This document shows positions 53,651-62,958 of a DNA stretch of 64,000 nucleotides, piece after piece (the first letter of the stretch is position 1; each line of letters opens with the position of its first letter). The translations under genes and the position numbers were made by a program. The notes beneath the pieces are model-generated. The model did not search any database. It was not told the DNA's origin and was given only the letters and a program-made list of their open reading frames with translations. The stretch lies in the sequence record MK514281.1; one strand, 5' to 3'.

Positions 53651-54205
53651 ATGGAAAAGATTACGAGCGATACGATCCTTGCTAAGTTACGTGAGGTGGC
53701 AGAAACAAACAAAGAAAACCAACATCATAAACTCCGCTCAATAAGCCAAACCATGGCGTACAACATTGAAGCGATCGTCGAGCTGATTGCGTTATCGGGT
53801 GAGATGCACCTTGACCTGCTTGATCGACACAAGGTTGATGCGATCATAGAGCCGCATTACAAAGGCAATCAACGGGCTTATAGTCGATTGAGCCATACCG
53901 CCTCTATTCATACGGGCATGGAATACCTTGCCGGCAACGCACACATCTATACCAACGACGACGGTAAAGAAGCGGTACGAATCATCTGCACCTTTAAATT
54001 TAAGCGCGACTTCCTGCAACCTAGCTTATTACCTAAGGTACTTCACTACTGCCTGCGGGAGCTTCAACCGCAGTTTGATGATGGCGGCAGTAGCGTCTTC
54101 TTCCACACACCGGGTGAGTTAGATAATCCCCGTCTTAAAGCCATTCCGGGCTGGCACGTCGACGCTAACGTCCGTGATAACTCCATTGTCATTAGTTTAC
54201 GTTAA
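53651..54205 (+). CDS. Hypothetical protein
   Basis: 184 aa; GGAG RBS. Confidence 0.65.
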   Translation: MEKITSDTILAKLREVAETNKENQHHKLRSISQTMAYNIEAIVELIALSGEMHLDLLDRHKVDAIIEPHYKGNQRAYSRLSHTASIHTGMEYLAGNAHIYTNDDGKEAVRIICTFKFKRDFLQPSLLPKVLHYCLRELQPQFDDGGSSVFFHTPGELDNPRLKAIPGWHVDANVRDNSIVISLR

Positions 54206-54215
54206 GGAACCAAAC

Positions 54216-54926
54216 ATGATCGTTGTTGTTGTTGATACTGAATCGACTGCTTTGGATGAGCTCGCGGGTATTCTGAGTTTGTCCGCTATTCGCACTAACG
54301 TGGCTGACATGAGTTGCATCAAGCACCTGATCGGCGTGCACCAAGCCGGCAAGACGCATGACGACATCTTCCATGCCGTATTGAACCTTAATGAACAATA
54401 CGTGATGGGTCGTACCTTCTTGCAAAGCACCCAGGATTGGTGGATGAAGAAAACCACCCCGGCGGCGAAGGCTTCAGTAACCGGACCAACACAGTCTGCA
54501 AAAGATGCTTTGACAGCATTTGTGGTTTTCATCGAAAAGGCCATTGAGGCGACGATTAACGAACGCGGGGAGAAAGCGAAGGTCCAGCTGTACTACCGTG
54601 GCGACTTCGATGCTAAAGCCATTGCGTCCCTGGCAAAAGCGGTGGGTGTTGAACTCCCGTATATCTTCAATCAGAACAAAGAGATCCGCACATATATCGA
54701 TGCCAAGCTGGACACGGATATCGGTTATATCCCGTGGCTCGGTTACCCAGAAGGACTGGGGCGTCATAGCTCACTCGATGATGTTCTAATCGATGGCTTC
54801 GAGATGGCGGTGGCCTATCGCATCAATCACCTCGAAAAGTTCGATAAAAAGTCGGTGCCGGGTGAGATCGCCAAACTGAAAGAAACGTACCCTGTTCCGG
54901 AGAAAACCCATGCAAAATCTAAATGA
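54216..54926 (+). CDS. DEDDh 3'-5' exonuclease (Rv2179c-like exoribonuclease family)
   Basis: VVVDTES, TQDWW, YYRGDFD, HSSLDD; AAGGA RBS before ATG 54216. Confidence 0.75.
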   Translation: MIVVVVDTESTALDELAGILSLSAIRTNVADMSCIKHLIGVHQAGKTHDDIFHAVLNLNEQYVMGRTFLQSTQDWWMKKTTPAAKASVTGPTQSAKDALTAFVVFIEKAIEATINERGEKAKVQLYYRGDFDAKAIASLAKAVGVELPYIFNQNKEIRTYIDAKLDTDIGYIPWLGYPEGLGRHSSLDDVLIDGFEMAVAYRINHLEKFDKKSVPGEIAKLKETYPVPEKTHAKSK

Positions 54927-55632
54927 CCGTATCTTTGCCAATTATAATGGTTACATTGAAGCTATTGATGCACATTTTAAACCTACCTATCAACTGCAGC
55001 TAGCTGAGCAAGTCATCCCGGCTGAGCAGATGGATAAGCTTGTAACCTGGATGGACCACAACGCCCATGTCAAAGGTGCGACGGTCTACCTGATGGAGTT
55101 GGTGCCTGATCTCGATAAACCGCATCCTGCACAATCAGAGATGCGTGTGTTTATTGCACTCGGTATGTTTAATCGTGAAGTCAACCCTGATTTGCCTTAC
55201 TGGTGTCATGTACATCGCCATTACCCGGTTAACCTCGCTGTCGACTTGATTGTTACTGACCTGCAAGGCGTTCCTGTAACCCATGCCGTTCTGACTGCGT
55301 TTAAGTCATTTGATCGAGCGCGTACCTACAGGGATAATCTCGGCGGCAAAGGTGGGCATCAACCGCATCACGAAATCCATACTGGCATTATTGACCAAAG
55401 TGGTAAGGTGATCTTCGAAGCCTACGGGAATATCAACTGGCATACCAAGAATGCCATTCGTCTGCTGGCCGAACGACAGATCCTGCAGGAAGATACCGAG
55501 TTGTCAGCGGTGTGGTTACTGGCGGGTTTAAAAGCAGGTGTCAACTGGAAAGTCGAAGACCATGTTGACATCATGAAAGCAATTGATACTTTCCGTCCGA
55601 GGAATACCCATGATTTTAACGGCTATGTTTAA
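54910..55632 (+). CDS. Hypothetical protein
   Basis: 240 aa; GGAG RBS. Confidence 0.65.
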   Translation: MQNLNDRIFANYNGYIEAIDAHFKPTYQLQLAEQVIPAEQMDKLVTWMDHNAHVKGATVYLMELVPDLDKPHPAQSEMRVFIALGMFNREVNPDLPYWCHVHRHYPVNLAVDLIVTDLQGVPVTHAVLTAFKSFDRARTYRDNLGGKGGHQPHHEIHTGIIDQSGKVIFEAYGNINWHTKNAIRLLAERQILQEDTELSAVWLLAGLKAGVNWKVEDHVDIMKAIDTFRPRNTHDFNGYV

Positions 55633-56374
55633 GAAGTGCTTTGGTGCTTCATCTGTCTATAAAGAAGATGACGGCAGCACGCGTATTACCGCCGACCAGT
55701 ATGAGCTTACGCTGGGGCGATCCTACAACCCTAAGCTTAAGCGTAAGGTAGGTCGGGGATTTGGCTTCTATGTCGAAAATGGTGAGAAGCTCGAGTTCGT
55801 CCTGCGGGGTTACTGGTTTGTGTTGATTGCCTGGAGCAAGAAGCGCAAATCACTCAAGTGGGACGAAGTGGAGAATGCACCGACCTACGGCTTCAATGTT
55901 GTCGACTCTGACTTAGCGATCTATCTGGGCAACGAATCCGCTAAGTCAGACAAACACATCAGCATGCGTAGTCGCAGCAAATACATCCCCCTGCCTTGGG
56001 CCTGGGTCTTCCATAAGCGTGAAGTGTTAACCACCCGTGACACCTGGACTGATGTCAAAGAAGGTGCGCTGTCTCAAGAGTGGTCGTTCCCCGCCACATA
56101 CATCACCAAGCACAATGAAGTGCAAGAGTTGATGGTCGAAGCGAAGATGGAGCGCATGAGTTGGCGCCTGGCATGGCTACCTTGGTTCGCGCCGGTTAGC
56201 AAGAAAGACCGCTCGGTAAGTTACAAGTACCACGGGAACGGTGGTAACGGGGTTGGTCACGATGCCAGTGGGTGGAAAGGCGGGGTCATCGGCGGTGGCA
56301 TTATCATGCGGGACAATGAACACAACCCGAAAGAAACATTCGACCGTTTAATTAAAGAGCAGCATTACGGCTAA
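55610..56374 (+). CDS. Hypothetical Trp-rich protein
   Basis: GAGGA RBS before ATG 55610. Confidence 0.6.
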   Translation: MILTAMFKKCFGASSVYKEDDGSTRITADQYELTLGRSYNPKLKRKVGRGFGFYVENGEKLEFVLRGYWFVLIAWSKKRKSLKWDEVENAPTYGFNVVDSDLAIYLGNESAKSDKHISMRSRSKYIPLPWAWVFHKREVLTTRDTWTDVKEGALSQEWSFPATYITKHNEVQELMVEAKMERMSWRLAWLPWFAPVSKKDRSVSYKYHGNGGNGVGHDASGWKGGVIGGGIIMRDNEHNPKETFDRLIKEQHYG

Positions 56375-56386
56375 GAAGGAAAGCAC

Positions 56387-57538
56387 ATGCGTCAGTATTT
56401 GGATGGGATTCGTTACATCTTTGAGAACGGGTCACAACGAGGGGATCGCACCGGGGTAGGTACGTTGTCGGTGTTCTCGATGAAGCAGACTTACGATCTG
56501 CGTCTGGGATTCCCACTGGTCACCAGTAAGAAAGTGCGTATCGATTTTATTATCGAAGAGCTCATCTCCTTCCTATCGGGTGACCCTGATATGCCGGGCG
56601 TGGGTATCTGGGATGATTGGCGTGTCAAAGACGAAGTCTCTCGTGAAGTCCCGTTAGAGAACCACGAGCGTTTAAAACTCTGGGTTGAGAAGTCGGACCT
56701 GAAGTATAACGTTGCTTACCTTCAACTCAATGCGATGGGTTCTGTCGAAGCGGGTCATCGTTTCCTGGATGAGCAAGGGATTCCACGTAACAGAAAAGAA
56801 GTACTGGTAGCAGAAGGTGCACTCAATGCACCCTATGGGCCAGCCTGGCGTGCGTGGAAAGGTCGTCTGGGCGAAGTGCATGATCAGATCGGTTATCTGC
56901 TCAAGCTGCTTAAAAACAATCCTACGAGCCGTCGTATGTTGTTGTCTGCCTGGGACCCGGCAAACATGCCGGATGAATCTATCAGTCCGCAGGATAACAT
57001 CATTGATGGCAAGCCATGTCTGACTCCGTGTCATTGGGCGTTTGAGCTGTACACTGACGAAATCCTGGCAGAGGAACGCCTTGATTGGGTCGAAGCTAAT
57101 GCACCTAGCCTCTGGGAAGACTACAATGATCGTTCAGGGCGCGGTCAGTGGTTAGGCGACACAGACAGTAAGCGCCTTCATGAATTCCTGGACGAAGCCG
57201 GCGTACCGAAGTATTACCTGGATCTGAAGTATCACCAACGTTCCTGTGACTATATGGTTGGCGTGCCGTATAACATCGCCAGCTATGCGGTGTTGCAGCA
57301 CATGTTTGCGGCCACCTGTAACATGATCCCGCGGATGATGGAAGCGGATATGACTAACATCCATATCTACAACTTCCACAAAACCAATGCGGTCATGCAG
57401 GCCAGTCGCAGCCCACGCGCACTACCCACTCTAAAGGTACTCGCCGCTCACGATAAGTTGGAAGACTATACGTTGGAAGACTTTGAACTCGAAGGTTATG
57501 ATCCGCATCCTTTTATTAAATATAAAAGAGCGGTCTGA
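56387..57538 (+). CDS. thyA: Thymidylate synthase
   Basis: GDRTGVGT, FPLVTSKKV, IWDDW, SRRMLLSAW, catalytic PCH, QRSCD and PYNIASY. Confidence 0.95.
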   Translation: MRQYLDGIRYIFENGSQRGDRTGVGTLSVFSMKQTYDLRLGFPLVTSKKVRIDFIIEELISFLSGDPDMPGVGIWDDWRVKDEVSREVPLENHERLKLWVEKSDLKYNVAYLQLNAMGSVEAGHRFLDEQGIPRNRKEVLVAEGALNAPYGPAWRAWKGRLGEVHDQIGYLLKLLKNNPTSRRMLLSAWDPANMPDESISPQDNIIDGKPCLTPCHWAFELYTDEILAEERLDWVEANAPSLWEDYNDRSGRGQWLGDTDSKRLHEFLDEAGVPKYYLDLKYHQRSCDYMVGVPYNIASYAVLQHMFAATCNMIPRMMEADMTNIHIYNFHKTNAVMQASRSPRALPTLKVLAAHDKLEDYTLEDFELEGYDPHPFIKYKRAV

Positions 57539-57971: not shown

Positions 57972-58673
57972 TCAATTAACGAGTTCTAATACGGGACGCC
58001 ATCCCCGGTTTCCTGTAGTACTCATTATGGATGAACCATAGGTGGTATAATCAGTGAAGCCTCGTCTTATAACTTGGGTGTCCGTAGGAACGGCAGCAAA
58101 CCCCATTGTTTCTTGGCACAAAGTACAACTGCCCAGATCGCTTGTGCTACTCACACCAAAGTAAGCGGTGGCGCTGGCAGTAGTCATTGTTGTCCATTCG
58201 CCATTTACTAAAGGATAGAACAGTTTGTTCCACTCCCCACCGGATGAAGTGGAGTTAGCGGGCAATGCCGATGAACCGGTGATTAACCTTACTCGGTATA
58301 CTTTCCCGCCAATAGTAACTTTTCTATTTTGAAGCACGGGCGTGCCCGGATTGGTATATCCATTGGTGTCGTCTCCGTACACGGCCCCGCAGTTATAAAT
58401 GGAACTCCAGGCTAGGGTACGACGAATAGCTTTCTGTGGAATAAACAGGGTTTTATTATTACTGGCAAACTTCAGCCAAGGTACGTCGCTGTTGTACGCA
58501 ACACCCTCAGTCAAACCAATCAAACTGGCTAAGGTAGTGTTATCAATAAATTCACTCTGCGTTAGGGTGCCGTAGTATCCTTTATCTCGCGTGCCGAATA
58601 ATAAGGCCTGACTACCCGGCCCTGTATCGCCAGAGACAACGCGATGAGCACCCCCTAAAAACAATTCCATCAT
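57972..58673 (-). CDS. Putative virion-associated protein with MMELFLGG N-terminus
   Basis: GPGSQALLFGTRDKGYYG...WLKFASNNKTLFIPQKAIR...GWRPVLELV, recalled as a jumbo-phage virion family; the only minus-strand gene in the accessory region. Confidence 0.6.
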   Translation of the reverse strand: MMELFLGGAHRVVSGDTGPGSQALLFGTRDKGYYGTLTQSEFIDNTTLASLIGLTEGVAYNSDVPWLKFASNNKTLFIPQKAIRRTLAWSSIYNCGAVYGDDTNGYTNPGTPVLQNRKVTIGGKVYRVRLITGSSALPANSTSSGGEWNKLFYPLVNGEWTTMTTASATAYFGVSSTSDLGSCTLCQETMGFAAVPTDTQVIRRGFTDYTTYGSSIMSTTGNRGWRPVLELVN

Positions 58674-58737
58674 AATTCTGCCCTTGTATGCACCGATCTA
58701 AGTTATACGATTAATATTCATCACAGATCTTTTCAGA

Positions 58738-58747
58738 CCTATATCAC
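58738..58747 (+). promoter_or_regulatory. Candidate early promoter motif CCTATATCAC
   Basis: Context TTTTCAGACCTATATCAC parallels AATCAGACCTACATTAC at 40035-40051. Confidence 0.4.
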
Positions 58748-58796
58748 GTCGGTGAATAACCTTTCACTAATTAACCAATCCGTAAGGAGCTTTACC

Positions 58797-60173
58797 ATGG
58801 CTGCATTAAAATCTAAAGTTGAACTGTTTCACTGGTATCAGGAACTGAAAACTGAATTTAAAACCGGCAAGATTACCGTGTTCGAATTTGAGCGGCAGGT
58901 GCTCAGCGAAATCCTTTCCCTGACCGATACTGGTAAAACACCATCTACTGCCAAAATCAGTCTGGTAGTGGACATCCTTAATTCTGTGGTTTTTGATCAT
59001 GTGTTTACCGCAGACGGTATCATTGACCTGGACAACATGCTCGCTCGTGAACACGTACGCAACATTTCGGAATTGACGGCAGCACGCAATAACTTTATTA
59101 CCATACAAGCCCAGGCCCGTCTGAACAAAGAAAAGGAACAGACTGCGAAACCAGCAGAGCAGAAGGCGTTTGCCAAGTTTCCAACGAAAGAAGAGCTCGA
59201 ATATTGGGTTAATGCCAGAAAGCTATTCCGTTATGGTAACCCCAATACGCTCGGCACTGAAGCATACCAGGAGGTTGTCAAATACTGGCATCTGGTCGAT
59301 AAATATCTGGGTACATTAAAACTGGAACTGGATCACACCGACCCTAACTACGTCGATAACATCCTGTTGATTGACTACTTTGTATCGTTGGTCGCCAAGC
59401 AAGAGGTTCCTGAGGAAGAACGCAGGCATCTGAAAGACACACTTAGCAGTCTATATGCGTGCCCCATTAAAACCCCACACATCGATGCATTTGTCGAACG
59501 TGACCAACACCCCCTTCCAGTTAAGCCAAAACAACCACCCATCGCGCAACAAGCCATCGACCGCGCTATTGCCTGGCGTGAAGAGGAAACCAAAACAAAC
59601 CATCAGCAAAAAGACATATTACGAGAATTCGCCGATCAATACTGTCCGGTAATGGTGGCCAAGCAACATGCCACTCAGCAGTTGTTTGATTTCGTTGCTC
59701 GTGCGGTGAAACGTGTCTTGACCGCCATTGCTCAGCCAAACAACCCGGAAGACGCCGAGATGCTGGCAAAAGGTCATGCCATCAACATTCTCAATGTTAA
59801 GCATGGTGTAATTGGTGTCAGTACCACGATTACCAGAAACGGTCTGGTCAAGTTACGCATCTTCGCTGAACGTGAACTATGTAACGAGGACTACGGTATT
59901 CCGACTCTGTCGTATAATCAAGTCCGTCAATCACCTCATGCAACGTTCAGCATACCAATGCCGGCACTGATAGATGGGTTCATTAACATGTGGGATATCC
60001 CTAATCAGGCCCCTCGCCATATGCATAATAGCGTAGGCGGTATGTTGGGTAATCCCTATCCGTTACAGCAGCTTGATGGTTTGATGTCAGCTATTGCAAG
60101 AGAAACAGCCGAGTACGGCGTTACGCCTACTTATGGCATGATCGAAGACAGCATGATTGTTGTGCTGCATTAA
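58797..60173 (+). CDS. Hypothetical protein; N-terminal helical domain shared with the next gene
   Basis: AAGGAG RBS before ATG 58797. Confidence 0.7.
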   Translation: MAALKSKVELFHWYQELKTEFKTGKITVFEFERQVLSEILSLTDTGKTPSTAKISLVVDILNSVVFDHVFTADGIIDLDNMLAREHVRNISELTAARNNFITIQAQARLNKEKEQTAKPAEQKAFAKFPTKEELEYWVNARKLFRYGNPNTLGTEAYQEVVKYWHLVDKYLGTLKLELDHTDPNYVDNILLIDYFVSLVAKQEVPEEERRHLKDTLSSLYACPIKTPHIDAFVERDQHPLPVKPKQPPIAQQAIDRAIAWREEETKTNHQQKDILREFADQYCPVMVAKQHATQQLFDFVARAVKRVLTAIAQPNNPEDAEMLAKGHAINILNVKHGVIGVSTTITRNGLVKLRIFAERELCNEDYGIPTLSYNQVRQSPHATFSIPMPALIDGFINMWDIPNQAPRHMHNSVGGMLGNPYPLQQLDGLMSAIARETAEYGVTPTYGMIEDSMIVVLH

Positions 60174-60180
60174 TTCACAC

Positions 60181-60210
60181 GGGGAGGTTTCCCTCCCCCT
60201 TTTATTTTTT
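60181..60210 (+). terminator. Intrinsic terminator
   Basis: GGGGAGG-TTTC-CCTCCCC followed by CTTTTATTTTTT. Confidence 0.75.
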
Positions 60211-60236
60211 AATTAACCTACTGTGAGAATTTAACC

Positions 60237-60938
60237 ATGAACAAAGAAACTTATACTACCTGGTACAATGGATTAAAAGAAAGATTGGCGACTGGGCACA
60301 TTAATCAAGAACACTACGAGACACTTATTGTTGACAATCTAAGTTCATTGATTACTCATTTCTTCAATAGTCGATACGACGATGGTCATATGTCTCTGGA
60401 GGAGCATTTTGCGTTAGTTAATCATTATTTCGAACTGGTTGCTGATGCAGAAATATCAGAACGCAGTGCCATGCTCATGGTACGTTCTGTAGCTAGCAGT
60501 ATTCAAAAGCTACCAGCGGCTAAAGCCTTCGCAGAGAAACATAACACTCCGGCGCCGTCAATTAAAGAAATTCTTGGTAGTCGACCTGGTTTACTGCGTA
60601 AGCATGCTGCCAGCACGACCGAGAAGATGATAGGGTGTCCGGTGATCACCCAGGCCAACGAACCTGAGAACGAAGTAACCATTGACTTACCCTGGAAATT
60701 GGCATTGCACGTTTACAAAGGGTTCCTGGTAAAGGCGCTGATGTCAAAGCACGGATATAAATACAGTGATGCGTATAACTACATTACTGATCATCAGAAC
60801 AAATACGACGAACTCTTGGCAGAAGTCCTCAACAACATTATTGCTAATGAGGAATCGCATCTGGTGTCGGTAGGTGGCGGCATCACTGCAGCGGGTACTG
60901 GTCTGGTGGTAAGCGGGATTATTAAGCCGGAGGAGTGA
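60237..60938 (+). CDS. Chimeric protein: helical N-domain plus degenerate RNAP beta-prime fragment (switch 2 to dock)
   Basis: ILGSRPGLLRKH-x12-VIT...LPWKLALHVYKGFLVKALMSKHGY...YDELLAEVL aligns with beta-prime [10 protein letters not shown]-x12-VIT...[18 protein letters not shown]; no NADFDGD. Confidence 0.6.
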   Translation: MNKETYTTWYNGLKERLATGHINQEHYETLIVDNLSSLITHFFNSRYDDGHMSLEEHFALVNHYFELVADAEISERSAMLMVRSVASSIQKLPAAKAFAEKHNTPAPSIKEILGSRPGLLRKHAASTTEKMIGCPVITQANEPENEVTIDLPWKLALHVYKGFLVKALMSKHGYKYSDAYNYITDHQNKYDELLAEVLNNIIANEESHLVSVGGGITAAGTGLVVSGIIKPEE

Positions 60939-61498
60939 TGAAAGGAGAGATAGAGACACGCTTCAGAAGACACTACGGCAACCACATTAAACGGGGTAGT
61001 GATATCGCAGTGCCTTTATACCACATTAGTCTACAGAATGACTTGGAGGGGCTATGGCGACCTAAAGCCCCTGACTCGCCATTTGATATTCCGAAGAAAC
61101 CCAACATCATTACTGAAATGCCGCTCCCGCGTATCTGTGTAGCACCATCTATCGAACAGTGCTTCTGGGCAATCTATCCCAATATCTCTAAGCTCTTTGA
61201 AGAGGAAGAATACGCAGCGGTTTGTTTTGCGGTTTATCAACCGATTCTGCATGCCGGTATTGCTGTCGTGGATACCAGTACGTTAACGCAATGCCGACTA
61301 GTGCACGATGCACATATTACCGGCGAGCATTGGTTACTTAGTGATACCACCATGTGTGTGATCGACTTTATTCAGGTTAATAACACCTCACACGGCGAGT
61401 TCGTAAAGTTCCATCCGTTTAATACCCCGGTTGGTAACGAATGGGAGCTCGCCCCTAAAAATGTTGTTTATTATTCACTTAAATTAACGGAGTTGTAA
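60938..61498 (+). CDS. Hypothetical protein (RICVAPSIEQC family)
   Basis: LYHIS...WRPKAP...EMPLPRICVAPSIEQCFWAI...TGEHWL. Confidence 0.65.
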   Translation: MKGEIETRFRRHYGNHIKRGSDIAVPLYHISLQNDLEGLWRPKAPDSPFDIPKKPNIITEMPLPRICVAPSIEQCFWAIYPNISKLFEEEEYAAVCFAVYQPILHAGIAVVDTSTLTQCRLVHDAHITGEHWLLSDTTMCVIDFIQVNNTSHGEFVKFHPFNTPVGNEWELAPKNVVYYSLKLTEL

Positions 61499-61502
61499 AT
61501 CC

Positions 61503-62147
61503 ATGGTAACTGCTAGAAAAGCTAATAAGACCTTAGGTGAGCACGCAGTGGCTCATGAGGCAGTAACACGCTTAGGTAGCAACAAGAAAGTCAAACCAGT
61601 TAAACCGCTTTGGACACTGGAGAACATCGAGGACAATCTGGTTGGTCAAGGCATCCTTGCCTACTTGAAACGCCACACGTCGTTATCGATCCGTGATATC
61701 AACACCGCGGCTAACCGCCTGACGAAGATTGCTGATTCAGATATAAAGGAAGGGAAAGCGCGTGATTACGTGGCACGAGTTATTGGGTACAACAATTACG
61801 ACGCTCTCAACGTCACCGTTCGTGCAGCGGTACCTGTGCGCAATCATGTACAACGTCGTAAAGCAAATCAGCCGGTCACAGAGTTGTTGATAGAAGACGA
61901 AGAACTGCCGCCGGTAACACGTACTGAAATCAACCCCTTGGTGATGTTAGCCCTACAGCGTGAGATCTCTAAACGCGGCTTTCGTCTACTGGGTAAGAAC
62001 TACCGGGCTTTCGTTAACAAGGATAACCCCGAGCACACCTTTACGTTGATGCAGGCGTATAACTACCTTGCCAAACAACTGGGTTATCCGGATTATCACT
62101 CTATGCCCCGTCAATACCCAATCATTAACTTGCGCTACGTCGATTAA
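61503..62147 (+). CDS. Protein with two tandem small helical (glyoxalase-superfamily-like) repeats
   Basis: ANRLTK...ARDYVARVIGYNNYDAL and GFRLLG...AYNYLAKQLGYPDYHSM. Confidence 0.55.
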   Translation: MVTARKANKTLGEHAVAHEAVTRLGSNKKVKPVKPLWTLENIEDNLVGQGILAYLKRHTSLSIRDINTAANRLTKIADSDIKEGKARDYVARVIGYNNYDALNVTVRAAVPVRNHVQRRKANQPVTELLIEDEELPPVTRTEINPLVMLALQREISKRGFRLLGKNYRAFVNKDNPEHTFTLMQAYNYLAKQLGYPDYHSMPRQYPIINLRYVD

Positions 62148-62169
62148 CCTATTGTAAGGAATAAAGAAC

Positions 62170-62919
62170 ATGACAACGACTTTCCCGAAAGAGATGAATG
62201 CTGCTTTCCATCCTGATAACGAACAAACCACCCAGCTGTGCAAAACGATCCAGCAGATCAGCGGGGTGGAGATCAAACGTGTACATGTGGTGATGGCGAT
62301 CCACCATTACAAACAAAACGATGCGGCACATCAGCCTGACCACATGCTGGCGGTCTTAGCAGAAGCAGCCCACATCATCCAGTCGTTTCCTGACCTGGAG
62401 AAATGGCGCACCCAGATCATGTTAGGGTGTCTGTTCCATGACACCCACTGTCACATCGATCGGGATATGCACCACCTGCTAGGCGCCGAACATGCCCAAG
62501 AGGCATTACTGGAGTATGCGTGTGGTTATGGGATGTCACGTGCGGATGTCTACCTGATCAGTCAGGCCGTACTGGAGCATCGGGCTTCCTGGAAGTACCC
62601 GCGTATTAACCCTGTATCCAACGCTGTGGCGTCTGCAGATCGTGGCTACCCTGATCTAAAGAAATACATCCGTCGTGCTGTACAGTACCGTTACAAGCGC
62701 ATGGCAGTCATCAACATGAACACCATCATCGATGAGTCGATCGAACACATGGTAGAGAAGTTCGGTGATGGCGGTTATGCCTGGGAAAGCTACCCGACGT
62801 ATGCAGCGGTGATGCACGGTGATGCGATTCAACAAGTGAAGCAACAACTGCGCAGTAAAGAAGGAAAGGCACAGCTCAAGGAGTACGCTGAACTCCACTT
62901 TGATGAGTGGGTAGAATAA
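62170..62919 (+). CDS. HD-domain metal-dependent phosphohydrolase
   Basis: HQPDH...LFHD...HHLLGAE...VLEHR...SAD metal-ligand pattern. Confidence 0.85.
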   Translation: MTTTFPKEMNAAFHPDNEQTTQLCKTIQQISGVEIKRVHVVMAIHHYKQNDAAHQPDHMLAVLAEAAHIIQSFPDLEKWRTQIMLGCLFHDTHCHIDRDMHHLLGAEHAQEALLEYACGYGMSRADVYLISQAVLEHRASWKYPRINPVSNAVASADRGYPDLKKYIRRAVQYRYKRMAVINMNTIIDESIEHMVEKFGDGGYAWESYPTYAAVMHGDAIQQVKQQLRSKEGKAQLKEYAELHFDEWVE

Positions 62920-62927
62920 GCTACGTG

Positions 62928-62958
62928 GCCGGAGGTAATCCTCCGGCTGTTATGCCTG
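62928..62958 (+). terminator. GC hairpin + TATGCC element
   Basis: GCCGGAGG-TAAT-CCTCCGGC-TGTTATGCCTG. Confidence 0.75.

Follow-up and report, generated by a model that had tools for sequence, protein, structure and literature searches.

The dock/switch-2 face of multisubunit RNA polymerases (RNAPs) meets the beta-like subunit and the initiation factor, and in cellular RNAPs it is at the dock that TFIIB or the sigma linker lands. The multisubunit RNAPs of jumbo phages assemble without alpha or omega subunits. In phage phiKZ, gp55 is the N-terminal half of beta-prime with the double-psi beta-barrel and gp74 is the C-terminal half with the bridge helix and trigger loop, and the sigma-like gp68 is in contact with both gp55 and the beta-like gp71-73 (PMC8287921). 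Here we describe gp72 of Erwinia phage Rebecca, which is encoded in the first 64 kb of the phage genome (MK514281.1; this whole stretch is called the window below). Positions 58700-62950 of the window were compared with this record and agree with it at 100% identity and at unchanged coordinates. Rebecca belongs to the genus Agricanvirus (species Agricanvirus ray) and is a nucleus-forming chimallivirus with a jumbo genome of 273.7 kb, and its close relative RAY has been characterised by experiment as a phage of the same kind (PMC10299810). By sequence and profile comparison, residues ~111-205 of gp72 are homologous to the N-terminal part of beta-prime (beta-prime-N) of the jumbo-phage non-virion RNAP (nvRNAP), i.e., of the phiKZ gp55 type. 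In the following, gp numbers refer to Rebecca unless another phage is named.

The record labels the gene (REBECCA_72) 'hypothetical protein', and its product is 100% identical to RAY gp70. It is a full-length member of phrog_11276, a PHROGs family of its own with no assigned function (E=8.3e-160, positions 1-233 of 233), and has zero profile matches in PADLOC, Pfam and NCBIfam, the defence and anti-defence families included. The related AH06_78 already bears the automatic annotation 'DNA-directed RNA polymerase subunit beta-prime', a label that overstates what that protein can be. The parts of gp72 are as follows.

60237..60938, plus strand: coding sequence of gp72 (REBECCA_72), 233 aa, with an ATG start
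60237..60551, plus strand: all-helical N-terminal domain, residues 1-105, modelled by AlphaFold2 (AF2) with a predicted local distance difference test score (pLDDT) of ~90
60567..60641, plus strand: switch-2-like segment (PGLLRKH...GCP), residues 111-135, from the gp55 and profile alignments
60642..60689, plus strand: VIT...TIDL, residues 136-151, the equivalent of the first beta-hairpin of the double-psi beta-barrel, with low model confidence
60690..60851, plus strand: dock-like helical module (LPWKLALHVYKGFLVKAL...HGYKY...DH..KY..LL), residues 152-205, from the alignments, with pLDDT 86-95 in the second of two AF2 models
60852..60935, plus strand: tail ESHLVSVGGGITAAGTGLVVSGIIKPEE, residues 206-233, nearly invariant in the family alignment

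Homology of gp72 to the N-terminal half of beta-prime

The preliminary description of this gene had proposed a stand-alone, non-catalytic excerpt of beta-prime that covers switch 2, the barrel start and the dock, and the profile and sequence searches have borne this out. In PHROGs, part of gp72, residues 54-205, also matches positions 226-368 of the 478-position profile phrog_2987 ('RNA polymerase beta subunit'; E=4.1e-17). A phmmer search of the PDB finds phiKZ gp55 (7ogp_A) at E=1.6e-5, where residues 111-204 are aligned ungapped to 292-385. The profile of the gp72 family, which consists of 12 members (the window protein and 11 database clusters), matches gp55 in the PDB at E=6e-10 and, over positions 53-209, the AR9 nvRNAP beta-prime-N (PDB 7S00/7S01 chain d) at ~8e-5; the AR9 protein, unlike gp72, is a full catalytic subunit in a characterised polymerase. 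When profiles are compared by hhalign, as had been suggested for this protein, five beta-prime-N sequences give a probability of 98.6% (E=7e-16), and an alignment of 91 such sequences raises it to 99.5% (E=3e-23). In addition, a hidden Markov model (HMM) built from genuine beta-prime-N subunits only matches two open reading frames (ORFs) of Rebecca, gp225 (E=1e-29) and gp72 (E=6e-23), with bit scores of 99.3 and 77.6, respectively. The phiKZ subunit named beforehand as the better match, gp74, was the wrong one, since the alignment goes to gp55, the N-terminal half. The homology to beta-prime-N of the gp55 type does not reach beyond residues ~111-218.

The shared stretch spans switch 2, the first hairpin of the double-psi beta-barrel and the dock, and its equivalent in E. 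coli beta-prime is residues ~329-420, mapped transitively via gp225/gp55. The likeness to E. coli beta-prime that had been noted at the outset therefore stands in part. That is, the elements follow one another in E. coli RpoC ~330-420 as they do in gp72, with an identical 12-residue spacing from R-x-(N/H) to VIT, which in gp72 (RKH to VIT) is read directly in the sequence, but direct matches of the family profile to bacterial beta-prime are not significant (E 0.16-0.5), and gp72 has no match to Pfam RNA_pol_Rpb1.

Compared with phiKZ gp55 (phrog_2987; PDB 7OGP/8QUE chain A), gp72 keeps G-x-x-R-(K/R)-H, (R)xVIT, LPW, (H/R)GY-Y and the dock helices, but shares only ~100 of ~490 residues. It lacks the clamp and has no counterpart of the Zn-binding cysteines C58, C60, C73 and C76, which are invariant in the beta-prime-N alignment. 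It also ends ahead of the RNPTL strand and of NADFDGD, and so is without the catalytic Mg-binding loop (DxDGD). This agrees with the earlier statement that the protein stops before NRAPTLH/NADFDGD; the sole DFDGD in the scanned Rebecca sequence (nt 1-272899) is that of gp225. Further differences from gp55 are an acidic instead of basic character, an unrelated N-terminal domain, a novel tail, the restriction to Agricanvirus-like phages, and a gene that does not adjoin chimallin. Actually, in Noxifer, PhiPA3 and Eowyn the true subunit directly follows a long gene, a phiKZ gp054 homologue according to the PhiPA3 record, and in L022 the gene before the true subunit carries a Pfam Chimallin domain.

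Rebecca has its own complete subunit. The product of gp225 (185535-187022), encoded ~120 kb from the gp72 locus, is a full-length orthologue of gp55 (phrog_2987 positions 2-478, E=1e-197; 7ogp_A, E=1.6e-67), and the annotated RNAP genes gp2, gp165, gp166, gp249, gp250 and gp272 cover the remaining subunits of the nvRNAP and the virion RNAP. Since the complete gp225 lies elsewhere and gp71, gp73 and gp74 show no detectable relation to beta-prime-N, gp72 is an extra partial paralogue. We have rejected a split gene that continues in gp73 and gp74 for the same reasons, namely the unrelatedness of both families and the presence of gp225.

Overall, gp72 is a chimera of an N-terminal helical domain, the beta-prime excerpt and a Gly-rich C-terminal tail, so that a fusion of the excerpt to an unrelated domain, as first described, is upheld: the N-terminal domain has no reliable beta-prime match and its first ~40 residues are gp71-like. 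Residues 3-40 align ungapped to gp71 residues 22-59 (hhalign E=5.8e-5), sharing the motif K..(Y/L)..WY.GLK..L..G.I...(Y/F)E, and residues 56-107 are weakly like gp71 202-256 (BLAST E=0.003). An HMM of the N-terminal motif has gp71 and gp72 as its sole matches genome-wide. The gp71 gene is always upstream of gp72, but its 473 aa product has no beta-prime homology and no Gly-rich tail. Two other assignments of the N-terminal domain have been discarded. One is the beta-prime clamp helices, where a greedy hhalign alignment reaches residue 2, but with near-zero column confidence over residues 1-110; the other is a YciE/DUF892-like domain, for which a profile match to PDB 3ogh (E=3.9e-4) exists, yet no family member matches that Pfam family.

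Within the beta-prime homology, the dock-like module is the best-conserved portion. In the switch-2 segment, G118 and R121 are invariant across the family, and position 134 is Arg in most members and Cys in Rebecca. The tail ESHLVSVGGGITAAGTGLVVSGIIKPEE occupies the place of the RNPTL strand of real subunits, and one family member has 38 more residues beyond it. The beta-prime-like module has a median isoelectric point of 6.3, i.e., it is neutral to acidic, versus 9.3 for the same region in 91 genuine subunits. This loss of basic charge speaks against a nucleic-acid ligand and in favour of a protein one.

The structural comparison with Foldseek gave a divided answer. The second AF2 model was built from a multiple sequence alignment to which genuine beta-prime-N sequences had been added, and its top 50 matches in the PDB are all RNAP beta-prime chains, such as AR9 7s00_d (E=7.8e-3, probability 1.00) and phiKZ 8que_A (E=1.2e-2). 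On the other hand, these E-values exceed 0.001, the switch-2 and hairpin part is poorly modelled even there, and the first, family-only model has no significant match.

Distribution, selection and origin of the gp72 family

A search of 5.8 billion proteins has yielded 11 clusters of the gp72 family, 233-270 aa long and with 55-98% identity. The largest contigs with a member are 275-288 kb, as large as the genome of a jumbo phage, and all contigs are consistent with Agricanvirus-like jumbo phages. An exhaustive search of 1.84 billion representatives returned 228 relatives, which, outside the gp72 cluster, are genuine subunits of 400-550 aa matched at ~260-370, or truncated pieces. The stand-alone form is thus confined to Agricanvirus-like phages. 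Other stand-alone families were considered and dropped, because the short matches are truncated genuine subunits that continue into RNPSL/NADFDG.

The ratio of non-synonymous to synonymous substitution rates (dN/dS, Nei-Gojobori) is 0.1-0.3 over the gp72 gene. For the tail it is 0.01-0.04 in most pairs, and 0.10-0.14 when L016 is one of the pair; as synonymous sites vary freely there, the constraint acts on the protein. The preliminary description had taken homologues under purifying selection as what separates a working gene from a decaying fragment, and an intact family of such homologues is what we have found. Judged by these sequence comparisons, gp72 is a functional, clade-specific accessory protein under purifying selection.

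As for its origin, gp72 is nearer to the beta-prime-N of the unrelated jumbo phages AgentSmith (E=2e-14) and Noxifer (E=2e-12) than to gp225 of its own phage (E=0.017). In a 98-column FastTree phylogeny, the family is monophyletic (support 0.998) with a long stem and stands apart from gp225, which ranks 73/91 by distance to gp72. The lack of grouping argues against a recent duplication of gp225, although the tree is short and poorly resolved and the result only suggestive.

The comparison of Rebecca with Special G/Ea35-70 shows that divergence is confined to nt ~60300-60700 (51-79% identity), with flanks at >=95%. This pattern identifies, from the alignment, a recombination patch over the N-terminal domain and switch 2 (residues ~22-155). 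A screen of Rebecca and Special G for a co-diverging partner, which covered 172.9-222.9 kb only, was uninformative. The two phages diverge in further patches as well, at Rebecca 176950-177098, 187899-188342 and 212814-214881. Downstream of its nvRNAP beta-prime-N gene, Special G also carries gp231, 'putative protein FinQ' (L021:17236-18264), flanked by two genes of 702 nt each; the FinQ gene is missing from Rebecca at ~189.8 kb.

We have also examined the tail as a mobile module and rejected this idea, since the apparent fusion in P0012 is a gene-model artefact on an eukaryote-like contig with scrambled phage fragments. This 4.7 Mb contig (GCA_054859325.1; L020:6000-10100) has 41% GC and reverse-transcriptase neighbours. 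It holds scrambled, frameshifted pieces of Agricanvirus-like gp2, the gp72 3' end and gp74, and P0012 splices in the gp72 tail. The pieces are either decaying phage DNA integrated in a eukaryotic genome or an assembly chimera.

Neighbourhood and expression signals

The order thymidylate synthase, small gene, gp71-like, gp72, gp73, gp74-like and HD phosphohydrolase recurs in 9/9 genomes compared. The features next to gp72 are listed below.

58752..60173, plus strand: gp71 (phrog_11106), 473 aa, function unassigned, the conserved upstream neighbour, unrelated to beta-prime
60181..60208, plus strand: GC-rich hairpin with a T-run between gp71 and gp72, terminator-like by sequence
60936..60940, plus strand: TGATG, a 1-nt overlap of the gp72 stop and the gp73 start, with T(G/A)ATG kept in 8/9 genomes
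60938..61498, plus strand: gp73, 186 aa, function unassigned, unrelated to beta-prime

A reading of gp71 as beta-prime or as a phiKZ gp68-like protein has been set aside, as neither profiles nor the PDB gave such a match. The final codons of gp72 (CCGGAGGAG) double as a Shine-Dalgarno-like GGAGG for gp73. With a mean column identity of 77%, gp73 is more conserved than gp72, and it carries the motifs PRICVAPSIEQCFWAIYPNIS and DAHxTGEHW; Pfam, PDB and PADLOC give zero assignments for it. Homologues of ~40% identity occur on contigs up to 172-458 kb, two of which have jumbo-phage markers nearby.

Four related metagenomic phages also keep the hairpin between gp71 and gp72, and both arms of its stem have changed in them. 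Elsewhere in the window, TTATGCCG is found at 12 sites versus 1.95 expected and is over-represented intergenically (e.g. 35275, 40433, 47593, 53573, 5438, 16142, 27584), and several copies lie just after GC-rich hairpins in intergenic gaps. By sequence, this arrangement looks like a terminator followed by a late promoter of the phiKZ 'TATG' type. The TTATGCCG TATG-type motif is not present upstream of gp72. The earlier designation of gp72 as an early gene is unsupported: what lies upstream is a terminator-like hairpin and no TATG-type late-promoter motif, and transcriptome data were not found. In addition, the palindrome TTAATTAA has 6 copies versus 0.82 expected (35753, 38324, 40483, 56348, 60209, 16287); 5/6 of them stand 20-40 nt upstream of plus-strand start codons, that of gp72 included, and no extended motif was seen around them.

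Among the genes further upstream, gp67 (55610-56374), annotated 'hypothetical', belongs to the Pfam family Acb3 (E=1.9e-61), inhibitors of the cyclic-oligonucleotide-based antiphage signalling system (CBASS). As a member of Acb3, it places an anti-defence gene ~4 kb upstream of gp72. The product of gp65 (54174-54926) has an Rv2179c-like 3'-5' exoribonuclease domain. Rebecca gp70 (57972-58673), encoded on the minus strand, resembles one domain of larger virion/tail-fibre proteins (phrog_1062, E=1e-44). The gene is missing from Special G at the same spot, an indel of ~700 bp in surroundings that are 97-99% identical, and the shorter query coverage of Ea35-70 suggests the same absence there. The thymidylate synthase of AH06 (L002:2775-4769) is annotated as two pieces around an HNH homing endonuclease gene, and that of Rebecca (56387-57538) is uninterrupted.

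Possible roles of gp72

Our best inference, which we hold tentatively, is that gp72 may imitate the RNAP surface and so engage one of the partners of the phage polymerase. Catalytically dead and exapted, the excerpt of beta-prime-N would act by surface mimicry, its free and acidic copy of the dock/switch-2 face binding the initiation-factor/beta-like partner or another factor that recognises this face. The N-terminal domain and the tail would couple partner binding to something else, perhaps gp73. The outcome would be a modulated assembly, activity or handling (nuclear import) of the phage multisubunit RNAP and not RNA synthesis. Host sigma or Nus factors, which had been proposed as ligands, are unlikely, as the module comes from a very divergent phage nvRNAP lineage and not from bacterial beta-prime; binding to them is not expected given the non-significant bacterial matches and the lack of Pfam RNA_pol_Rpb1.

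Several observations weigh against such mimicry. Owing to the Foldseek E-values above 0.001 and the beta-prime sequences in the alignment behind the second model, the structure is consistent with the homology and gives no independent support. Between Rebecca and Special G, the patch in gp72 has no parallel in the divergence of the nvRNAP genes gp225, gp249 and gp250, so there is no signal of co-variation between gp72 and the nvRNAP. Homologues of gp73 occur in other jumbo-phage contigs with no gp72-like gene nearby. Half a double-psi barrel alone may lack a native-like surface. Finally, RAY gp70 is absent from the GFP (green fluorescent protein)-tagged set and from lysate mass spectrometry (PMC10299810, PMC6690015).

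Possible too, if somewhat doubtful, is an exapted scaffold that works outside transcription, in which the dock survives only for its stable helical fold and gp72 exerts its function through the N-terminal domain, the tail and/or a complex with gp73/gp71. It would fit that the most constrained segment is the tail, which is not from beta-prime, that the nucleic-acid-contacting charge is lost, and that co-variation with the nvRNAP genes is absent. The accessory neighbourhood with the Acb3 CBASS inhibitor 4 kb upstream and the overlap of the gp72 stop with the gp73 start point the same way. However, the module scores nearly like a genuine subunit against the generic beta-prime-N profile (77.6 versus 99.3 bits), and G118, R121 and mostly Arg134 of switch 2 are kept though they lie outside the dock fold, which suggests conservation beyond a scaffold.

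It is unlikely that gp72 is a decoy against a host defence that senses RNAP, or an adaptor that mimics a nuclear-import feature of the nvRNAP (the PicA pathway, by piggy-back import or competition). Such a role would suit an accessory region rich in anti-defence genes (Acb3) and the mosaic recombination patch inside the gene. However, we know of no defence system that senses phage RNAP beta-prime, there is no PADLOC match, and dN/dS gives no positive selection. According to PMC12571901, nvRNAP subunits are imported mainly through PicA, but the determinants by which PicA recognises them are not known to map to a gp72-like region.

Conflicts between co-infecting chimalliviruses are known to target RNAP genes, and gp72 could in principle be an inter-phage weapon, a dominant-negative 'poison subunit' against the nvRNAP of co-infecting chimalliviruses to which the divergent gp225 of its own phage is immune. 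We regard this as improbable. The greater nearness to the foreign beta-prime-N of AgentSmith and Noxifer than to gp225, and the separation of the two in the 98-column tree, would agree with it, but the tree is short and poorly resolved, likeness to foreign subunits could reflect fast evolution of gp225, and a fragment with half a barrel may be unable to compete with the full subunit. A broader combination also seems unlikely: a self-immune dominant-negative beta-prime mimic that would poison the assembly of a rival nvRNAP, or titrate or hijack a recogniser of the dock face (the sigma-like fifth subunit or an import factor), with the Gly-rich tail inserting as a strand into the partner.

Still less probable is a tail-anchored membrane protein, with LVSVGGGITAAGTGLVVSGII as a glycine-zipper helix that tethers the module, e.g. 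to the early infection vesicle. The tail does contain a 21-residue uncharged C-terminal stretch with small-xxx-small spacing (G214-A218-G222-S226) that is invariant in the family. Nevertheless, its hydrophobicity is below the usual thresholds for a membrane helix, with a Kyte-Doolittle mean of at most 1.48 over 19 residues and a summed Hessa-scale free energy of +4.1 kcal/mol, and 31% of the long ORF segments in the genome are at least as hydrophobic. AF2 models the tail as non-helical, and one member extends 38 residues past it. The truncated excerpt without any catalytic motif might suggest a relic without function, left from the duplication or capture of a beta-prime-N gene, but this is effectively refuted by the intact ORF, the length conserved in 12 members at 55-98% identity, the dN/dS of 0.1-0.3 with saturated synonymous sites, and the conserved neighbours and gp73 stop/start overlap.

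We have found no paper in the literature on a free-standing beta-prime excerpt in chimalliviruses. The role of gp72 can be put to a direct test in RAY, for which both antisense knock-down and GFP localisation have been established (PMC12571901, PMC10299810). The finding corrects the database annotation of AH06_78, and it touches the questions of how the split subunits of jumbo-phage RNAPs meet, enter the phage nucleus and are regulated; the unexplained middle-promoter activity that has been noted (PMC7598289) is one example of the regulation question. A free, non-catalytic copy of switch 2 and the dock is a natural probe for binders of that face. If gp72 does regulate or sabotage polymerase assembly, it would represent a new type of transcription regulator made from the enzyme's own surface; otherwise, it would be a clean case of domain exaptation in the phage accessory genome.

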